IMG/VR virus record: IMGVR_UViG_3300042907_001080
Location: 186,001 to 250,000 of that record
Reading direction: 5' to 3' (one strand)
Length of the DNA stretch: 64,000 nucleotides
How positions within the stretch are numbered: position 1 is the first letter of the stretch; each line of letters starts with the position of its first letter. The notes under the pieces are model-generated. The model was not told where the DNA came from. It saw nothing but the letters and a program-made list of their open reading frames with translations, and made no database searches. The translations under genes were made by a program, and so were the position numbers. Below, in pieces: positions 31,901 through 58,695 of the stretch.

Positions 31901-32140
31901 ATGCTAGGATTAATCAAGAAACTTTTTGGCAGTAAGCCAGCCGAACCTGTTGCAGTTCCCTACAAGGTAGAAACTCCACCAGTCGAAGTCGCACAACCTT
32001 CAGTCGAGCCAACAGCAGCAGAAGTTTCTGCTGAAAACAAAGCAGTGGCAGTGGCAAAAGCCAAACGAGCACCAGCGAAAAAAGCGCCTATTAAGAAAGT
32101 AGCAGCGCCGAAGACTCCGCGAAAGCCAAAGGCTCCGTAA
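31901..32140 (+). CDS. small protein with Ala/Lys/Pro-rich histone-H1-like tail
   Basis: AAGGAG SD; MLGLIKKLFG amphipathic N-terminus; KRAPAKKAPIKKVAAPKTPRKPKAP. Confidence 0.72.
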   Translation: MLGLIKKLFGSKPAEPVAVPYKVETPPVEVAQPSVEPTAAEVSAENKAVAVAKAKRAPAKKAPIKKVAAPKTPRKPKAP

Positions 32141-33161
32141 CTTTTTTATCCTGCTCGTAAAGGGCAAATGAGGCTAAATTCTTGGCCTTGCTTTCACACA
32201 TGATGTCTGCCCACGGCCTATGTGTCAACGCCCACTCATTGACCGCGGTATTCCAATAAAAGCCACTGTGTGCTCTTAGTTTGGCTTTTTTGTAACCTGC
32301 TTCTAGGAGGGACGGAAGATCGGGGCGGATGTGTCTGGGATGGTCAATAAGACAGTCTTCCCGTGAAACACTATAATGTATGACAGGGCGCACACCACGC
32401 CAGCTATCGATAACCCTTTTAACACGATCATCATTTGCTTCAATGTATTCTCCAGTTTTAATCCAGTGATGATGAATGTCTAGCACCAAGGCACAGTCTT
32501 TGACCAATTCAATGCTAGATTCAATACCCCAGGTCATTTCGTCATTTTCAATGGTAAGGCAGTTGCGAGCCTCGGGTGTCATTTTGCTAAGAGCGTCACG
32601 AATACCTTGTGGTCCCAGCTTGCCGGAGATATGCACATTGATCTTGAAGTCTTGGAATGTTTGACCATATCCCATCCATCGAGCCATGTCCACATGATAC
32701 TCGAACTCTTCTATACTGCGTTCTACTATGCCCGGGTTAATAGACGCCAACACGCAAAACTGGCCAGGATGAAAGCTGAGCCTAACATTATTCTTCCTAG
32801 CCACATCACCCACACGGGCAAATCCTCTTTCTGCAAAGGCTCTAACATCGGGCTGCCGCCAAAACCACTTCCAACTAGGCTCAGTGTATACAGGAAGTAT
32901 ATCACTTGAGAGTCGTACCATTCTAAGATCTTCATCTAATGTTCCTACCCTGCTGACTAATTTATAGCAGGCTTCTATGTTTCGTTCCATTAACTCCCAA
33001 AGACGCTGTTCTGCTTCTTGAGGATGTTCACGCAACCACCTAACTGTGGTAGAGCCTGTATTTAAGTCACGATCAACAGCATTGATTTTCATGCCGTTGA
33101 CTTCGGAAGGATCGTTGATCCATTTGCAGGCAAAGCCTAGACGTCTGAGTGTAGTGTTCAT
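32091..33161 (-). CDS. uvsE: UV-damage endonuclease UvsE/UVDE
   Basis: RLGFACK, RLSSDILP, RLSFHPGQFCVL, INVH, LTIENDE, LVLDIHHH, IMCESKAKN. Confidence 0.93.
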   Translation of the reverse strand: MNTTLRRLGFACKWINDPSEVNGMKINAVDRDLNTGSTTVRWLREHPQEAEQRLWELMERNIEACYKLVSRVGTLDEDLRMVRLSSDILPVYTEPSWKWFWRQPDVRAFAERGFARVGDVARKNNVRLSFHPGQFCVLASINPGIVERSIEEFEYHVDMARWMGYGQTFQDFKINVHISGKLGPQGIRDALSKMTPEARNCLTIENDEMTWGIESSIELVKDCALVLDIHHHWIKTGEYIEANDDRVKRVIDSWRGVRPVIHYSVSREDCLIDHPRHIRPDLPSLLEAGYKKAKLRAHSGFYWNTAVNEWALTHRPWADIMCESKAKNLASFALYEQDKKVTEPLAFAESSALLLS

Positions 33162-33167
33162 ACTATA

Positions 33168-33196
33168 AGTATAACATCATCACTGCCAGTTGTCAA
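33168..33196 (-). promoter_or_regulatory. sigma70-type promoter, probably giving leaderless uvsE mRNA
   Basis: TTGACA-17nt-TATACT, ending 6 nt before the ATG. Confidence 0.8.
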
Positions 33197-33986
33197 CTAC
33201 AAATTTGTCCTGAACATCCTGTGGATTTGGTTCTCCGTGAAACACAGCTATACTACAATCTGGAGGAGGTCGCACATCGTGTTTCACTGTTTTGAATCGC
33301 CGTCCGCCATGTGCAACAGTGAGTTCATCTCTGCTGCGTATTTCCCATTTGTAACTCATAATCCATTCTTTGGGCCAAAATATCATTCTATCTTTGGCTA
33401 TCTTCCAAATCCAATCTTGATCTCCTTGCAGCCGTTGTGCCTCCGACGGTTTCGATTTGAATTGATCGTATATATGACCTTGTGTGCCGTGTGTCCATGC
33501 CAACACCGAACTGTTGAGATAATTCCAACTGGGGAAAAATTTTCTATTGAAATCATGGATACCTATAAAACTGGTAGGATGATATCCAGTGAGCTTATTC
33601 ATGTTGGCATGTATGACTACATCTAGATCCAGATATAATATTCTTCCCCTGAGAGGTAATGCAGAATCAAACATGTGAACCTTGTGCCACCAACCTCTAG
33701 CATAATTGGCGTTGGGTTGATATATTTTACGAACTCCGGCAATATCATGTTGATCGTCGGTGAGACAGGCAAACTCATAAGGCACTGTGAGATGTCTAGA
33801 CACCATATTACGTAGACGCTCTACATATTCACGACCATATTTGTTACCGAATCTCACACACAGCACAGTGATAGGTTCGTTGAGATCCGAAGGCACTACA
33901 AGATCGGGATATTCTCCACGTGCTGCCATTTTGGCAGCTCGCTTTTCAGCCTTGGCTTGTATGCGTTGTTCTTTTGACAATTCCAT
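33180..33986 (-). CDS. glycosyltransferase (GT-A/GT8-like)
   Basis: GNKYG..YV..L..MV.RHL, WW.K..MF, LYLDLDVVI (DxD), NSSVL.W, GDQDWI, VFHGEPNP. Confidence 0.8.
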   Translation of the reverse strand: MELSKEQRIQAKAEKRAAKMAARGEYPDLVVPSDLNEPITVLCVRFGNKYGREYVERLRNMVSRHLTVPYEFACLTDDQHDIAGVRKIYQPNANYARGWWHKVHMFDSALPLRGRILYLDLDVVIHANMNKLTGYHPTSFIGIHDFNRKFFPSWNYLNSSVLAWTHGTQGHIYDQFKSKPSEAQRLQGDQDWIWKIAKDRMIFWPKEWIMSYKWEIRSRDELTVAHGGRRFKTVKHDVRPPPDCSIAVFHGEPNPQDVQDKFVVDNWQ

Positions 33987-34791
33987 CTATGGCTACCAAG
34001 TCTTTTAAAATATCACCCAGGTCGTCTAGTTTGATCATATTTGGACCATCGCTAGGAGCACTATCAGGATCTTCGTGACATTCCATAAAGACAGCTGCCA
34101 CTGAACCTGTGGCTATAGCAGCTCTCGCCAGGTATGGGACCATGGTCCTATCTCCGCCAGATCTTTCTCCCATTCCTCCAGGCTGTTGAACAGAATGTGT
34201 GGCATCAAAGACCACTGGATAGCCAGTGCTTGCCATAATAGGTAGGCTGCGCATATCAACCACAAGATTATTGTATCCATGAGTGTATCCTCTTTCGCAT
34301 AACATAATGCGTTCGTTTCCAGTTGAAGCAATCTTTGATGCGACGTTTTTCATATCGTGGGGAGCAAGAAATTGTCCCTTCTTGACATTTATAGCACAGC
34401 CTGTAGCACCCGCGGCCAACAATAAGTCAGTTTGTCTACATAAAAATGCTGGAATCTGTAGTATGTCAATGCCAGCATCTGCACATTCCTTTGCCTGCCA
34501 GCTTTCATGAATGTCTGTCAAAACAGGCACTCCGAACGTATGTTTAATCGCATTAAGAACATCAAGTCCTTCTTTGATTCCTACACCACGTTTGGTAGAA
34601 ATACTAGAACGATTGGCTTTGTCAAAACTGCTTTTGTATATCAAAGGAATACCTAATAATGCTGTGATAGCAATTAATCTTGCACAAGTATCTTCTGCAT
34701 GATCTTGACTTTCAATTTGGCAAGGTCCAGCAATTAATACGAACGGAAGATTGTTACTAACAGAGAGAGAATTAATATTAAATGTATGCAT
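33946..34791 (-). CDS. kdsA: 3-deoxy-D-manno-octulosonate 8-phosphate synthase (metal-dependent type)
   Basis: AGPCQIES, KSSFDKANRSS, QIPAFLCRQTDLL, NVKKGQFLAP, FDATHSVQQPG, PSDGP. Confidence 0.96.
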   Translation of the reverse strand: MHTFNINSLSVSNNLPFVLIAGPCQIESQDHAEDTCARLIAITALLGIPLIYKSSFDKANRSSISTKRGVGIKEGLDVLNAIKHTFGVPVLTDIHESWQAKECADAGIDILQIPAFLCRQTDLLLAAGATGCAINVKKGQFLAPHDMKNVASKIASTGNERIMLCERGYTHGYNNLVVDMRSLPIMASTGYPVVFDATHSVQQPGGMGERSGGDRTMVPYLARAAIATGSVAAVFMECHEDPDSAPSDGPNMIKLDDLGDILKDLVAIDGIVKRTTHTSQG

Positions 34792-34799
34792 ATAATTAT

Positions 34800-34991
34800 T
34801 TACCAATGCCTAATGGTGTTGGCAACAATAAAGCAACAGGTTATAACGTGAATGACTACCCAAAAAGTTTTTAAGAATAAAACAATTCGAGCTTCACGTA
34901 GAGTGAGGATAGGCACATCTGGCCTATCCTCATCAGTTTGTCCCATTCTGTGCCCGGTTGCCCGAGCCCATATTTTTTCAAAACTATTCAT
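34800..34991 (-). CDS. small membrane protein
   Basis: 63 aa with hydrophobic C-terminal helix; ATGA-coupled to queD. Confidence 0.68.
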   Translation of the reverse strand: MNSFEKIWARATGHRMGQTDEDRPDVPILTLREARIVLFLKTFWVVIHVITCCFIVANTIRHW

Positions 34992-35515
34992 CCTTCGTAT
35001 ATTGCAGAATTACCTGCGTGTTCGAATACTTCGGCAGATTTTAGTTTAACGCCTACGCCAACAGGATAACGTGCTTCAAAAACACGACCATCAGGATGTG
35101 TCCAGCCACGGCCTTCTTGATAAGCAGTTAGAATTTCGTTCATAGTCTTGTAAACTAGTTCGGCAAACATTTCACAGCCTACACCATCTACAATACGTAG
35201 ATCGATGATGCCCATGTTTTTAAAACCACCTTGGATTTTGTTTAATTCTACAAATGTGCCACGTTCTGGATCGTCTTTGCCAATAACTAGTGTATGATCA
35301 AATTGCCATTCACTCCATTCTTTGAATGCTTTGAGTCCACCAAAGTCCATGACCCAGTTGCGATCATCTAAGGTTTCTGATTCAAAGATTAGTTTAATGC
35401 CAATGGAGTAACCATGTAGCATAGAACAATGTGAGTGCGTTGAACGCCATTGTCTAAAACAGCATGACAGCCCTCTGTCGTTGCCGTAAGTTTTTGTTGA
35501 AAGATATTTTGCCAT
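34988..35515 (-). CDS. queD: 6-carboxytetrahydropterin synthase / PTPS
   Basis: SHCSMLHGY, NWVMDFGGLK, FDH, GCEMFA, VFEH..NSA.Y. Confidence 0.88.
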   Translation of the reverse strand: MAKYLSTKTYGNDRGLSCCFRQWRSTHSHCSMLHGYSIGIKLIFESETLDDRNWVMDFGGLKAFKEWSEWQFDHTLVIGKDDPERGTFVELNKIQGGFKNMGIIDLRIVDGVGCEMFAELVYKTMNEILTAYQEGRGWTHPDGRVFEARYPVGVGVKLKSAEVFEHAGNSAIYEG

Positions 35516-35538
35516 CTCTAGTCTCCTTTATATAGGTA

Positions 35539-35592
35539 GCAAGTTTGATGACTGCAGAGTGTTTATAGAGGGATGATGCCATAGAGTCCTCT
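35539..35592 (-). promoter_or_regulatory. preQ1-I-like riboswitch aptamer variant in the queD 5' UTR
   Basis: Minus strand AGAGG-ACTCTATGGCATCATC-CCTCT-ATAAA-CACTCTGCAGTCATCAAACTTGC upstream of an AAGGAG SD; P1 stem and ATAAA match the Bacillus queC preQ1-I pattern. Confidence 0.68.
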
Positions 35593-35626
35593 TTGTGTGT
35601 ATTGTAATATTATATTACATTTCTAT

Positions 35627-36220
35627 TTATAATGCAATGAATTTCACATTATTTTTCTGCCATTCCGGTGGCATCTGCCAGTCTGGTCTATTATAGATCA
35701 CAAATGTTGTATCGGGATAATACATGAATACTGCGGCAATTTGATAGACCCAATAGCTGGGATCTACTGCCTGTGATCCCACTCTAGCATAGTTCACGGT
35801 GCCTTTGTAGATATTATTCACACTGTGATCGATCGGATACAGATCAAATCCGATCATTACAACTTCTTCGTGTCCTAACATCGCTGACAATAGCACAGCA
35901 TAACCGCCACTGCCCCAATGTTCAGCTTGATCCTTTTTCGATTCACCTCGGGTAGGCACCTCAGGTAGAAGATTGATGTTTTTGTTTTTTCTTATTTTTC
36001 TGAAGTAGTGATGCCAATGGTCCCGCACATAGATTTCTGTGTCTTTGGTATTGGGATTATTTACAGCTTCGTCAGCCATTCTGCGATCGCAACAGACCAA
36101 ATGATTGACATTTAGATCTCGATGTATGGCATTACATCCTATAAGAACATGATCGGTGTATGCGCTGATATCAACGCGGCGTCTACTTTCGCCATTGCCA
36201 ATTACCAATGCTCGAGGCAT
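35627..36220 (-). CDS. GT42/MAF(DUF115)-like putative CMP-ulosonate glycosyltransferase
   Basis: LVIGNGESR, IGCNA, SGGYAVLLSAMLGHEEVVMIGFDLY resembles the CstII/MAF fold pattern. Confidence 0.55.
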   Translation of the reverse strand: MPRALVIGNGESRRRVDISAYTDHVLIGCNAIHRDLNVNHLVCCDRRMADEAVNNPNTKDTEIYVRDHWHHYFRKIRKNKNINLLPEVPTRGESKKDQAEHWGSGGYAVLLSAMLGHEEVVMIGFDLYPIDHSVNNIYKGTVNYARVGSQAVDPSYWVYQIAAVFMYYPDTTFVIYNRPDWQMPPEWQKNNVKFIAL

Positions 36221-37062
36221 TATTCGATTCTACCGAATCCGTTCCATATTCCAGGGTTGCCTGGCTGAACACATACCCAACCAATTGACTTTCCTGCTTG
36301 AGGTGAACTGTTCCATACGATATCGCCTTCGTTAAACGAACCGCTACTAGGAGGTTCATTCCCACTAAGATGCAACTTGTCGTTGAATTTTAATGCACCA
36401 TTTACGTGTAATGTACTACGAGGATCAGGATTGTTGACATTGATGCCCAGGGAACCTATGATTGTGACCTTGGTATCGCCCACCGTCGGATTGCCTATGA
36501 TAACATTACCGCCAGCTTTGATTTGGATCCTAGCTGTGTTATCGGTTCCTAGTTCTAGGTCAGTGTAATTATAAGTGCCAATTCTTGCAGTGTTGGTACC
36601 TTCTGCACCTATTACTATATCCACATTTTGATCTATGATATTAACAGCAGCTTTGGGTTGATCTGTTCCAAGCCCTAATCGATCAGATATACTGTCATAA
36701 ACTAGATATTGATTTACACTTAATCCGCCATCTACTATCAATCCCTTGAGACGACCAACTTCTCTTAAACTGCTTTTGGTTACGGTAGGACCTAATTCTT
36801 TCTCATCAATTAATTTGATGTTGTTGGTGCTTAGATATTTTCCTTTGGCAAGATCTATATTTTCAGATATAAAAAATCTATCTGGATCGGAATTAAAAAT
36901 GAACTGTTTATTATGTCCCTGTCCATTCCACAGTATGCCTTTGCCATTGATATCGCCTTTGATGATGATGTAAGGGAATTCAGCAGAGTCAATTTCTTGA
37001 CCTTCTTGAAATACTTCTTGCAATAGGGTAGTTAGGGCATTTAATTTTTCTTGGCTTGCCAT
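36220..37062 (-). CDS. putative virion protein (paralog of 37064-38158)
   Basis: Shared GKG.LW.GQG..KQFIFNS.PDRFF, KELGPT.TKS.LREVGRL, EGDI.WN..P....GWVC; start revised to MASQEK. Confidence 0.68.
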   Translation of the reverse strand: MASQEKLNALTTLLQEVFQEGQEIDSAEFPYIIIKGDINGKGILWNGQGHNKQFIFNSDPDRFFISENIDLAKGKYLSTNNIKLIDEKELGPTVTKSSLREVGRLKGLIVDGGLSVNQYLVYDSISDRLGLGTDQPKAAVNIIDQNVDIVIGAEGTNTARIGTYNYTDLELGTDNTARIQIKAGGNVIIGNPTVGDTKVTIIGSLGINVNNPDPRSTLHVNGALKFNDKLHLSGNEPPSSGSFNEGDIVWNSSPQAGKSIGWVCVQPGNPGIWNGFGRIE

Positions 37063-37063
37063 G

Positions 37064-38158
37064 TTATGAATTTCCAATTTTACCGAAAGGCGACCATATC
37101 CCAGGAGATCCGGTTTGAATGCACACCCAACCCACATAAGAGTTCATTCTCGGTTGGATGTTCCATATAATGTCACCTTCGTTATACGATCCATTTGTTG
37201 GATAAGTGCTGTCGTATTTTTGCAGTCTATTGTTGAATCTCACTGCGCCATTTACATGCAGATCAACTTCTGGATCCGGAGTCGAAACCCTTACTGAAAG
37301 TTTACCATGTACATGTATTTGGGTAGGAGCCAGTTTGGGATTACCTAATATAATATTGCCACTCGACGAGATGATTATTCTTGCAGTGTTGTCAGTGCCT
37401 AATTCTAAATTATTACTGGCGTAAGTGCCAATGAATGCTTTTACGGTGTCTTTGGTGCCGAGAACTATCTCTACTCCGTCATCTAGGATGCTGACAGCTG
37501 CGTTAGGATTTTCAGTGCCTAGTCCTAGTCTGCTAGTGTTGGCATCGAATACCATAAACTGACCCACCGATAATCCGCCATCTACTATCAGTCCATTAAG
37601 CCGACCAACTTCTCTGAGATTGCTTTTGGTTATAGTAGGACCTAATTCTTTCTCATCAATTACTTTGATGTTGTTGACAGTGATGCTTTTGCCTTTGGCA
37701 AGATCGATGGATTCAGATGAAAAGAATCTATCCGGACTGGAGTTAAATATAAACTGTTTGGTATATCCTTGGCCACTCCAAAGCAGTCCTTTGCCGTCGA
37801 TGGTATCACCTGAAAACACAATAGGCACATCTTTCTCAAATTTGATATCTGCACGTATCTCATCCACCTCTAGAATCTTGGTTTTTAGGGTGCCTGCGAC
37901 TGTGAGATTATCGATGTTTTCTACGAACAGATTAGTGACAGTGACACCATCATTGTTCACTGTTAATTGAGTTTTTACAGCGGTATCTGTGATACCGGTG
38001 CTGGCAAAGTTATGTATTTTGCCTCCGGAAATATGATCCCCCGATAGAGATCGAAATGGCATTTTTCTTGCGATTTCTTTGACATCTGGGGCAGCGGTTT
38101 GTGCGATCGAGTTGATCTCATCGCCTAGTGCGGCTAATAAATTATTGACATTACTCAT
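37064..38158 (-). CDS. putative virion protein (paralog of 36220-37062)
   Basis: Same shared motifs; TAAATA 7 nt upstream; start revised to MSNVNN. Confidence 0.68.
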   Translation of the reverse strand: MSNVNNLLAALGDEINSIAQTAAPDVKEIARKMPFRSLSGDHISGGKIHNFASTGITDTAVKTQLTVNNDGVTVTNLFVENIDNLTVAGTLKTKILEVDEIRADIKFEKDVPIVFSGDTIDGKGLLWSGQGYTKQFIFNSSPDRFFSSESIDLAKGKSITVNNIKVIDEKELGPTITKSNLREVGRLNGLIVDGGLSVGQFMVFDANTSRLGLGTENPNAAVSILDDGVEIVLGTKDTVKAFIGTYASNNLELGTDNTARIIISSSGNIILGNPKLAPTQIHVHGKLSVRVSTPDPEVDLHVNGAVRFNNRLQKYDSTYPTNGSYNEGDIIWNIQPRMNSYVGWVCIQTGSPGIWSPFGKIGNS

Positions 38159-38180
38159 AGTAATGTATTTATCCGCCAAC

Positions 38181-38207
38181 AAAAAAGCGGACCAAAGCCC
38201 GCTTTTT
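38181..38207 (-). terminator. rho-independent terminator (likely bidirectional)
   Basis: Minus strand AAAAA-GCGGGC-TTTG-GTCCGC-TTTTTT. Confidence 0.85.
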
Positions 38208-56690: not shown

Positions 56691-57288
56691 TGATAATATT
56701 GTAAAGTTTTTTGGCCGCAATGCTATGTGCTATTGGGCCGGGATGGTTATTGTCGGACGCTAAATCTTCTGTATTCAAAATGTTATCACGTAACGCATTA
56801 TTGATAAATTTGGGAATACTACCAAAGTATTCGCCAATGGTGACATCAATTACTCGATCTATCAACATCTCCGGTTTCGGTGGAGCCCAAAAAGGATAAT
56901 AACGGAGTCCTAAACTATTAATATATAATTCTGCATGATTAATATAGATACCTGACCTAACATTGTTGTCGTAATTAGAATGAACCTCAGACCATTTCTT
57001 AAACAATTCGTCGTCCTGCCACGGTCCTATTTTTTTGTTCTTTTCTACTATATTAAAAATTACATCTCTATGAGAATAGGTCCAACCCACTACAACCAAG
57101 TCATCTTTCTTAAACCTAAACGACAAGATACGGGATAGTATCTCTAGATTACTACTACCCGGATCTCCGTTATTAATAGTTGTTCTGCCAGTTAATTTTC
57201 CTAACACTGCCGGCCATGATTGACTAGACGGATCATCTAATGCTAATCCAAGGGTAAATGAACAACCGAATGTTATAAGTCTTGACAT
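56680..57288 (-). CDS. SGNH/GDSL-like hydrolase or acyltransferase
   Basis: FGCSFT, G.SN, D..HPG. Confidence 0.68.
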   Translation of the reverse strand: MSRLITFGCSFTLGLALDDPSSQSWPAVLGKLTGRTTINNGDPGSSNLEILSRILSFRFKKDDLVVVGWTYSHRDVIFNIVEKNKKIGPWQDDELFKKWSEVHSNYDNNVRSGIYINHAELYINSLGLRYYPFWAPPKPEMLIDRVIDVTIGEYFGSIPKFINNALRDNILNTEDLASDNNHPGPIAHSIAAKKLYNIINAK

Positions 57289-57986
57289 GATATTGCCCAT
57301 TGTCTTTCTTTACACCAAAAGCATTCGTTACAAACTGGAACGTATTGACCCGGTATATAGTTTTTATAATCAATGCCTACTATCTCGCCTTCACAACTGC
57401 GGGTAATTTCAAACAGATCCGTGAGGCCAAGCTCACTATACATTTTAACAATTTCTGACTTGTCTGTGAAGCGGAATGGATGATAAACCATAAAGCCCAT
57501 GTGTTCCATTTCTGCCAAATGCTTGTTGTCCTCTGTAGGGTCAATGTCACGTTCACTCATACCATTGAATTGTGCTAATCTTGGGTTACGGGTTACTCCG
57601 TTGTAAAACGCATCTATGTTATATTTCTTACAAATATACTCTGCGTAAGCTCTTGCTTGAATGTTGTCACCGCTCACTTGCTTACCATACTCGTCGGTTA
57701 AGTTTGGTCCTACATTGCCGTACTCTAAATCGGGCGCAATAAAGTTAATATGCCGTTTAAATGTTGTATGATAGAAATTTTGAAATAACCATTTACACAC
57801 AGTATCTGCATTGTCTTGTTGCCAAGGTTTGGTTTTCCAGCAACGTATATGATTAATGATATGTATAGTTATATTATGTTCTTTGGCTTTTTGGCAAACC
57901 ATATAGGCAAGTAATGCGCTATCGGCACCGCCACTAACGGCAATGGCAATGTTTTTCCATTTTGGATTGAAGGGTACCTTGAACAT
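57273..57986 (-). CDS. QueC-like PP-loop adenine nucleotide alpha-hydrolase
   Basis: VSGGADS, HPF...KSEIV, TRSC...CNECFWCKER; start revised to MFKVPF. Confidence 0.75.
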   Translation of the reverse strand: MFKVPFNPKWKNIAIAVSGGADSALLAYMVCQKAKEHNITIHIINHIRCWKTKPWQQDNADTVCKWLFQNFYHTTFKRHINFIAPDLEYGNVGPNLTDEYGKQVSGDNIQARAYAEYICKKYNIDAFYNGVTRNPRLAQFNGMSERDIDPTEDNKHLAEMEHMGFMVYHPFRFTDKSEIVKMYSELGLTDLFEITRSCEGEIVGIDYKNYIPGQYVPVCNECFWCKERQWAISCQDL

Positions 57987-57991
57987 GGATA

Positions 57992-58022
57992 TATTTACAC
58001 GAGTTATACTAGCACATAAATA
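57992..58022. promoter_or_regulatory. divergent TAAATA late-type promoter pair
   Basis: TAAATA 5 nt and 4 nt before the two divergent ATGs (57986 and 58027). Confidence 0.65.
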
Positions 58023-58026
58023 TTTC

Positions 58027-58695
58027 ATGATTAACATAACCATGTGGCAATGCCCAAAAGGACTAATAGAACAAGCATTATCAGAGTGCCCAATTGAAGG
58101 TAGTCGCACTGCCTTGAATACTCCAACCGGTGACTTCTTCTATGACAGTTGGCAAATCAAAGATGAGTTTAAAGGTACAGCGTGGGAAGAACTACTATCT
58201 ACTTTACCTTACACAATTGGAGAAGCTCGTGTTATTACACTTGATCCCAATCAAAGTTACATGTCCCACGCTGACATTGATAATCGTTGGCATTTAAACT
58301 TGTCGGGCGAGCAGTCATATTTGATAGATTTAGATAATCAAAAAATGTATAAACAACGTGTAGACAATCATTGGTGTTATATGTTTGCTAATAAAATACA
58401 TACTGCTAGTAATTACGGTAGTGTACCACGTAAACAACTTGTAGTTCGCGAACCGTTAAAACGTAGCCACCACAAAAATTTAATCAACGTTGAAATTACT
58501 CCAGCATACGAACAGTTTGACTATCGTTATCAGTTTGACAATATTATTAGCCCGTGGCTGAATCGTAAGAATCAAGAAGGCGTTCTTGACAACTTTGTTT
58601 ACAAAGATACGGTTGTATCCTTTAGTATAGCAGAAGATGTCCAAGGACAACTTGACGCAATTATTTCTAATAAGTTTAAAGTTATCTATGTTTAA
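58027..58695 (+). CDS. aspartyl/asparaginyl beta-hydroxylase-like 2OG-Fe(II) oxygenase
   Basis: GEARVI.L.P..SY..HAD..RWHL, IHTASNYG..PR..LV; start revised. Confidence 0.78.
   Translation: MINITMWQCPKGLIEQALSECPIEGSRTALNTPTGDFFYDSWQIKDEFKGTAWEELLSTLPYTIGEARVITLDPNQSYMSHADIDNRWHLNLSGEQSYLIDLDNQKMYKQRVDNHWCYMFANKIHTASNYGSVPRKQLVVREPLKRSHHKNLINVEITPAYEQFDYRYQFDNIISPWLNRKNQEGVLDNFVYKDTVVSFSIAEDVQGQLDAIISNKFKVIYV

Follow-up and report, generated by a model that had tools for sequence, protein, structure and literature searches.

The leader of the queD-like gene and its surroundings

The stretch of DNA analyzed here (the window, 64,000 nt) is positions 186001-250000 of a 281,658-bp IMG/VR record of an uncultured phage (G000:C1). 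On the minus strand, a 111-nt gap separates a 197-aa ORF (35627-36220) from a 175-aa ORF (34988-35515), and this gap is the leader of the 175-aa ORF. Downstream of it on the same strand (32091-34991) are a 63-aa ORF, a full-length KDO-8-phosphate synthase (NF003543, E 5e-122), a glycosyltransferase-like protein and a UvdE UV-endonuclease; a phage-borne KdsA points to a Gram-negative host. The 305-aa and 372-aa ORFs just upstream of the leader (36220-38182) match tail-fibre and virion-protein PHROGs, and a run of very large ORFs (975, 1393, 1625, 596 and 2485 aa) occupies 8801-30292 of the minus strand. Read as RNA, with its 5' end at 35592, the leader and its flanks contain the following features, all on the minus strand:

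35632-35637, -35-like hexamer TTGCAT
35609-35614, -10 hexamer TATAAT, with a predicted transcript start near 35602
35588-35592, P1 5' strand AGAGG, pairing with 35567-35571
35572-35587, 16-nt loop ACUCUAUGGCAUCAUC, which comprises the next three features
35584-35587, L1 (ACUC)
35577-35583, P2 5' strand (UAUGGCA; the paired nucleotides are 35578-35582)
35572-35576, L2 (UCAUC), whose final C (35572) abuts the P1 3' strand
35567-35571, P1 3' strand CCUCU
35554-35566, L3 (AUAAACACUCUGC), an A-rich half followed by YUCUGC
35547-35553, P2 3' strand (AGUCAUC), also the 5' strand of a helix that sequesters the start codon
35529-35546, linker AAACUUGCUACCUAUAUA, which in the predicted OFF fold pairs imperfectly with the Shine-Dalgarno region and is conserved only within platform type A (defined below)
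35523-35528, Shine-Dalgarno AAGGAG, 7 nt before the AUG
35511-35516, GAUGGC, the start codon (AUG at 35515) with its flanks, 3' strand of the sequestering helix
34988-35515, queD-like gene (6-carboxytetrahydropterin synthase family), 175 aa, with motif CxxxHGY

An earlier sequence-only reading described a preQ1-I-like riboswitch variant at this site, and its observation was confirmed: the RNA is present, and loop AUGGC (35582-35578) is complementary to GUCAU (35552-35548), as it had stated. The GCAG/UUGC hairpin that it proposed ahead of the Shine-Dalgarno can be drawn in the window, but it is neither the minimum-energy fold nor conserved. The single-sequence fold is not special (z = -0.53), so the evidence is comparative. 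A 42-aa ORF (35454-35582) starts at the AUG inside the loop and overlaps the queD start, but this AUG is absent from most family members and the ORF is probably not meaningful.

The 175-aa protein belongs to the PTPS/QueD family, matching PF01242 (E 6.6e-13) and phrog_2389, "QueD-like" (E 2.5e-32). It falls below the NCBIfam QueD cut-off (TIGR03367, 36.2 bits against 89.25) and carries CxxxHGY instead of the CxxxHGH signature (PMC10516641). However, it is 44-48% identical to the QueD-like proteins of Pseudomonas phage PCCM_PaP002 and Acinetobacter phage HD01, where the CxxxHGY protein is the only QueD homologue inside QueE-QueC-QueD-FolE-DpdA clusters. We infer from this context that the protein probably works as QueD and that the family very probably makes 6-carboxytetrahydropterin. 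The phage also encodes GTP cyclohydrolase I (FolE), a QueE-like radical SAM enzyme (phrog_2076) and a phosphoribosyltransferase about 60 kb from queD, outside the window (G000:C1:157650-162974). Searches for TGT/DpdA and QueC in this genome and in three near-complete relatives were negative or marginal; a 278-aa PP-loop ATPase in the window (57273-58109, minus strand) scores weakly with QueC, TilS and LarE models (15-31 bits) and is not a clear QueC. This may be a QueC-less deazaguanine route, as in Cellulophaga phage phiST, or synthesis at the nucleotide level. Phages with FolE, QueD and QueE but no QueC are known, and because their DpdA3-type enzymes escape such searches (PMC10516641), the negative results do not exclude DNA modification.

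Conservation and covariation of the pseudoknot

The same element precedes QueD-like genes in about 190 uncultured lake-phage contigs. A search of IMG/VR with the protein found more than 592 relatives, of which 80 loci were kept; of 81 leaders, the window included, 75 carry the element, one more is truncated and five lack it. A 23-nt degenerate pattern taken only from L2, the P1 3' strand and L3 occurs once in the window against 0.00 expected and in at least 120 viral contigs of IMG/VR. Among the 120 hits examined, 118 also have the P1 5' strand, an L1 starting NCU and a complementary P2, none of which is part of the pattern. Together this gives 193 instances and 144 unique sequences. A covariance model built here (R1) found exactly one strong copy in each of five large phage genomes (49-65 bits), always before the QueD-like gene, and the next-best hits (at most 20.6 bits) were read and are spurious. 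The same pattern, one base shorter, was run against 596 Gb of prokaryote genomes; of the first 120 hits, only 5 have even a 5-bp P1 and none has the L1 NCU start and a complementary P2, although these hits do not prove absence from bacteria. BLAST of two leader types against cultured phages in GenBank gave only chance matches, and the protein region matched five cultured phages in which queD sits mid-operon without this leader.

The gene association is nearly uniform. Of 116 downstream ORFs, 112 are QueD-like, and in three of the other four a cupin or a methyltransferase comes first and the QueD-like gene second. The fourth (locus L201, 2658-3650) is the most divergent copy, with an AU-rich P2 (UAGU/ACUA), and precedes a 306-aa protein of unknown function (phrog_14221) with only weak PTPS/QueD-family similarity. 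Counting such divergent paralogues, every operon behind the element contains a QueD-like gene. At one locus (L180, 6747-7172), a canonical 141-aa QueD (CxxxHGH) is directly followed by a 171-aa QueD-like protein of the same cluster as the window's protein, both behind one copy of the element, so the two forms may not be redundant. A QueE-like radical SAM gene (phrog_2076, E 3.5e-54) lies downstream in 27 loci, and GTP cyclohydrolase I lies upstream in 26.

The covariation across phage queD leaders that the sequence-only reading had named as a test was found for both helices, which form an H-type pseudoknot. We aligned the sequences without reference to pairing, taking the P2 5' strand as the 7 nt before the last 5 loop nucleotides and the 3' strand as the 7 nt after the 13-nt L3. 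P1 (5 bp) is 99.4% paired in the 144 unique sequences, with a center pair of C-G in 92, A-U in 31 and U-A in 21. The five core pairs of P2 (5-7 bp) are 86% paired, compared to 58% when partners are shuffled (maximum 64% in 2000 shuffles), and all seven P2 pairs are 73% paired in register compared to 26-45% when shifted by 1-5 nt. The top P2 pair is U-A in 76, C-G in 21, A-U in 19 and G-C in 12. On a gapless MAFFT alignment of 86 sequences, P2 is 69.9% paired against 49.3% shuffled, with a covariation score of 0.579 against 0.229 (0 of 500 shuffles reach it) and at most 0.18 for slid registers; in 48 sequences, P1 is 98.8% paired, with a score of 0.295 against 0.066. This evidence makes it very unlikely that the element is a DNA-level signal, a promoter plus operator, because crossing covariation has no DNA-level reading, G-U pairs are tolerated in P2, and the spacing between the P1 arms varies from 13 to 19 nt.

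The unpaired segments are also conserved. L1 reads NCU followed by 0-7 variable nucleotides, with C at position 2 in 138 of 144 and U at position 3 in 125 of 144. L2 reads UCANC (U 143, C 142, A 143, N, C 144 of 144), and L3 is always 13 nt (NNAHAHAYUCUGC), A-rich and ending in the invariant YUCUGC. The L2 and L3 columns of the 120 pattern-derived loci were partly fixed by the pattern, which inflates these figures in part, but the columns are equally conserved in the 75 loci found through the protein. L3 positions 4 and 6 follow the P1 center pair in all 144 sequences (mutual information 0.94 and 0.82 bits): C-G goes with a pyrimidine at position 4 and A at position 6, whereas A-U or U-A goes with A at position 4. 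Both states occur within platform classes A, A', C and D, and the simplest reading is a base triple between L3 and P1. A blind mutual-information scan over all fixed columns, leaving out pairs of neighboring columns, ranked highest the P1 center pair, P2 pairs 7-1, 6-2 and 5-3, and L3 positions 4 and 6 with the P1 center pair.

A pseudoknot with conserved loops could equally be a translational operator bound by a protein, either the QueD-like enzyme itself or a phage or host regulator, that selects one of two folds, in the manner of the 5' pseudoknot of the T4 gene 32 leader. Its bistable leader (described below), its conserved single-stranded nucleotides, its detection only in phages and its constant tie to one protein family are consistent with this. 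We consider it unlikely, since the element is kept before very different QueD paralogues (141-aa canonical, 195-aa and 306-aa forms) and before a cupin or methyltransferase placed ahead of queD, it occurs across phages from small contigs to 380-kb genomes, no conserved neighboring regulator gene was seen, and its small size and the C next to P1 resemble small-molecule aptamers.

Expression platform and comparison with known riboswitches

Downstream of P2, the leaders fall into at least four designs. Type A, that of the window, has UGYCAUC ... GAUGGCA; type C has UGYCAUUGUU ... AACAAUGGCA; type D has AAGUCAUC ... GAUGACUU; and type B has CCUAUG ... CAUAGG, which covers the Shine-Dalgarno. In every design the 5' strand of this helix is the P2 3' strand, which never contains the Shine-Dalgarno. 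In 98% of 154 unique leaders, at least four of the first eight nucleotides after L3 pair with the start or Shine-Dalgarno region in the minimum-energy fold of the downstream segment, compared to 41% after those eight nucleotides are shuffled. In the window, GUCAUC (35552-35547) pairs with GAUGGC (35516-35511). Among 103 unique non-B leaders, 82 have a contiguous helix of 7 bp or more here, and the bases flanking the AUG and the second codon covary with the strand after L3 (C/G, UG/CA, CU/AG, CUU/AAG). The two helices therefore exclude each other, and each is supported by covariation, although in type B leaders the overlap of P2 with the Shine-Dalgarno hairpin is only 2-4 nt. The hairpin is more stable than the bare P2 duplex in 91% of leaders (median -8.6 against -5.3 kcal/mol); because the folding method used cannot compute pseudoknot energies, the balance between the two states is only estimated. 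The default state should be closed, and extra stabilization of the pseudoknot should open the start site. No U-tract terminator is present, so control would be translational.

Two competing folds of similar size, at the very 5' end of the transcript in types A and C, might instead constitute a ligand-independent device, such as a folding-pathway element, thermosensor or leader stabilizer that sets a fixed or temperature-dependent level of translation. This is unlikely, as invariant unpaired nucleotides in L1, L2 and L3, a fixed L3 length and a base-triple-like rule go beyond what a thermosensor or stabilizer needs.

No Rfam 15 family matches the window copy, short excerpts of it or seven other loci. 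In particular, the class I preQ1 model (RF00522) gave no hit at its gathering threshold (39 bits) and none at E <= 10 in excerpts of 351 and 111 nt, and over the whole phage genome it listed three other sites at 9.7-11.9 bits, treated as noise, and not this one. Literature searches found no description of the element. The architecture nevertheless parallels preQ1-I: an H-type pseudoknot with a 5-bp P1 (5-6 bp in preQ1-I), a C at the 3' end of L2 directly before the P1 3' strand, where preQ1-I has its specificity base C15/C17 (PMC10622847), an A-rich L3 starting right after P1, which in preQ1-I makes A-minor contacts (PMC3273816), and association with a gene of the queuosine/7-deazaguanine pathway. 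The window copy even shares AGAGG/CCUCU and the AUAAA start with the Bacillus subtilis aptamer tail (PMC3273816). In contrast, L3 is 13 nt with an invariant YUCUGC half that preQ1-I lacks, compared to about 6-7 nt; P2 has 5-7 bp, compared to 3-4; L1 differs; the putative aptamer is about 46 nt, compared to roughly 34 nt (30-36); and the element has been seen only in uncultured phages. In preQ1-I the P2 3' strand carries the Shine-Dalgarno or terminator-controlling sequence, so that ligand binding represses expression, whereas here it is complementary to the start codon or Shine-Dalgarno, which predicts activation. We therefore describe the element as preQ1-I-like in fold and opposite in predicted logic, and do not file it as a preQ1-I member.

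The interpretation in the sequence-only reading was thus partly supported. A structured, conserved, phage-borne RNA in the queD leader, P1, the AUGGC/GUCAU pseudoknot and the resemblance to preQ1-I hold. Membership in the PreQ1 family, the GCAG/UUGC alternative hairpin and feedback control of deazaguanine synthesis are not supported, and a divergent preQ1- or preQ0-sensing OFF switch seems unlikely.

Other known systems share individual features. Translational ON riboswitches such as the add adenine riboswitch of Vibrio vulnificus likewise use ligand-stabilized aptamer folding to withdraw a strand that otherwise pairs with the ribosome-binding region, but add is a three-way-junction purine aptamer of a bacterial purine-salvage gene, without sequence relation. 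SAM-II, SAM-V and other H-type pseudoknot riboswitches of about 50 nt exert translational control and have a loop that lies in a helix groove and forms base triples, but their conserved nucleotides and gene context differ, none matches here in Rfam, and the Shine-Dalgarno is inside the pseudoknot, giving OFF logic. THF-II (folE motif) and THF-I riboswitches sense a pterin-type heterocycle and are tied to the GTP cyclohydrolase/pterin branch from which QueD also draws its substrate, but they are bacterial, with different folds and OFF logic, and have no Rfam match here.

We consider it somewhat more likely than not that the leader folds into an H-type pseudoknot aptamer that acts as a translational switch. 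Comparison establishes a conserved, covarying pseudoknot with a loop-helix contact in the queD leader, tied to genes of one pathway, and a mutually exclusive, covarying helix that shares its strand at 35553-35547 and hides the start codon or, in other leaders, the Shine-Dalgarno. That the hairpin is the default OFF state, that a small ligand is bound at all, and that binding turns translation on are inferences. In this view, a ligand with a guanine-like face would be read by the invariant C at the end of L2, by analogy with preQ1-I, and would stabilize the pseudoknot, free the start codon and turn on translation of queD and, in other phages, of queE and neighbors in the same operon. ON control of a biosynthetic enzyme by a pathway metabolite is unusual, but it fits a precursor or substrate better than an end product. 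Candidates, which are guesses, are dihydroneopterin triphosphate or another pterin, GTP or guanine, or a 7-deazaguanine intermediate that this enzyme family consumes.

We regard the element as a well-supported new riboswitch candidate. It is possible, though slightly less likely than not, that it represents a new riboswitch class, so far seen only in phages: a preQ1-I-like pseudoknot enlarged and rewired into an ON switch that senses a guanine-faced intermediate of the GTP, pterin and 7-deazaguanine route, letting the phage start its DNA-hypermodification pathway only when precursor is available. Riboswitches are rare in phages (PMC9004378), and none is known that belongs to phages alone. All known preQ1 riboswitches repress, so an activating aptamer of the same architecture would show how a minimal pseudoknot can be rewired and may reveal a new ligand in the pterin/7-deazaguanine area. 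It would also be the first regulatory signal described for phage 7-deazaguanine DNA modification, a counter-defense against restriction. With about 46 nt of putative aptamer, 144 natural variants, several natural platform designs and clear predictions for mutants, the element is ready for experiment.

Promoters and transcripts of the leader

In the window, a perfect TATAAT lies 17 nt after TTGCAT, which matches TTGACA at only 3 of 6 positions and was not listed by a consensus scan; the transcript would begin about 10 nt before P1. Related leaders of types A and C have strong sigma-70-like promoters whose -10 ends 6-9 nt before P1, placing the element downstream of the promoter, which also speaks against a DNA-level signal. 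In contrast, none of 51 type B leaders has a promoter upstream of P1, but 47 of 51 (among them loci L025, L044 and L075) have a near-consensus one inside the element, between the P1 3' strand and the Shine-Dalgarno. There, L3 supplies TTTACA or TATACA, followed by 17-18 nt and TATAAT or TAAAAT in the hairpin loop, often with TGn. This observation favors a DNA-level reading, and transcripts from this site would lack the aptamer.

Contigs from four lake metatranscriptome runs cover the leader and the first codons (35435-35650) at 90-100% identity. Contig depth falls off upstream of about 35590-35617, from 184 (35510-35563) to 18 (35564-35617) to 0 further upstream, one 1559-nt contig ends at 35589, and one fragment abuts an adapter at 35585. 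Although this is compatible with the predicted start, contig ends are not transcript ends and DNA carry-over is possible, so the support is only weak. Relatives of this phage are evidently common in lake RNA libraries.
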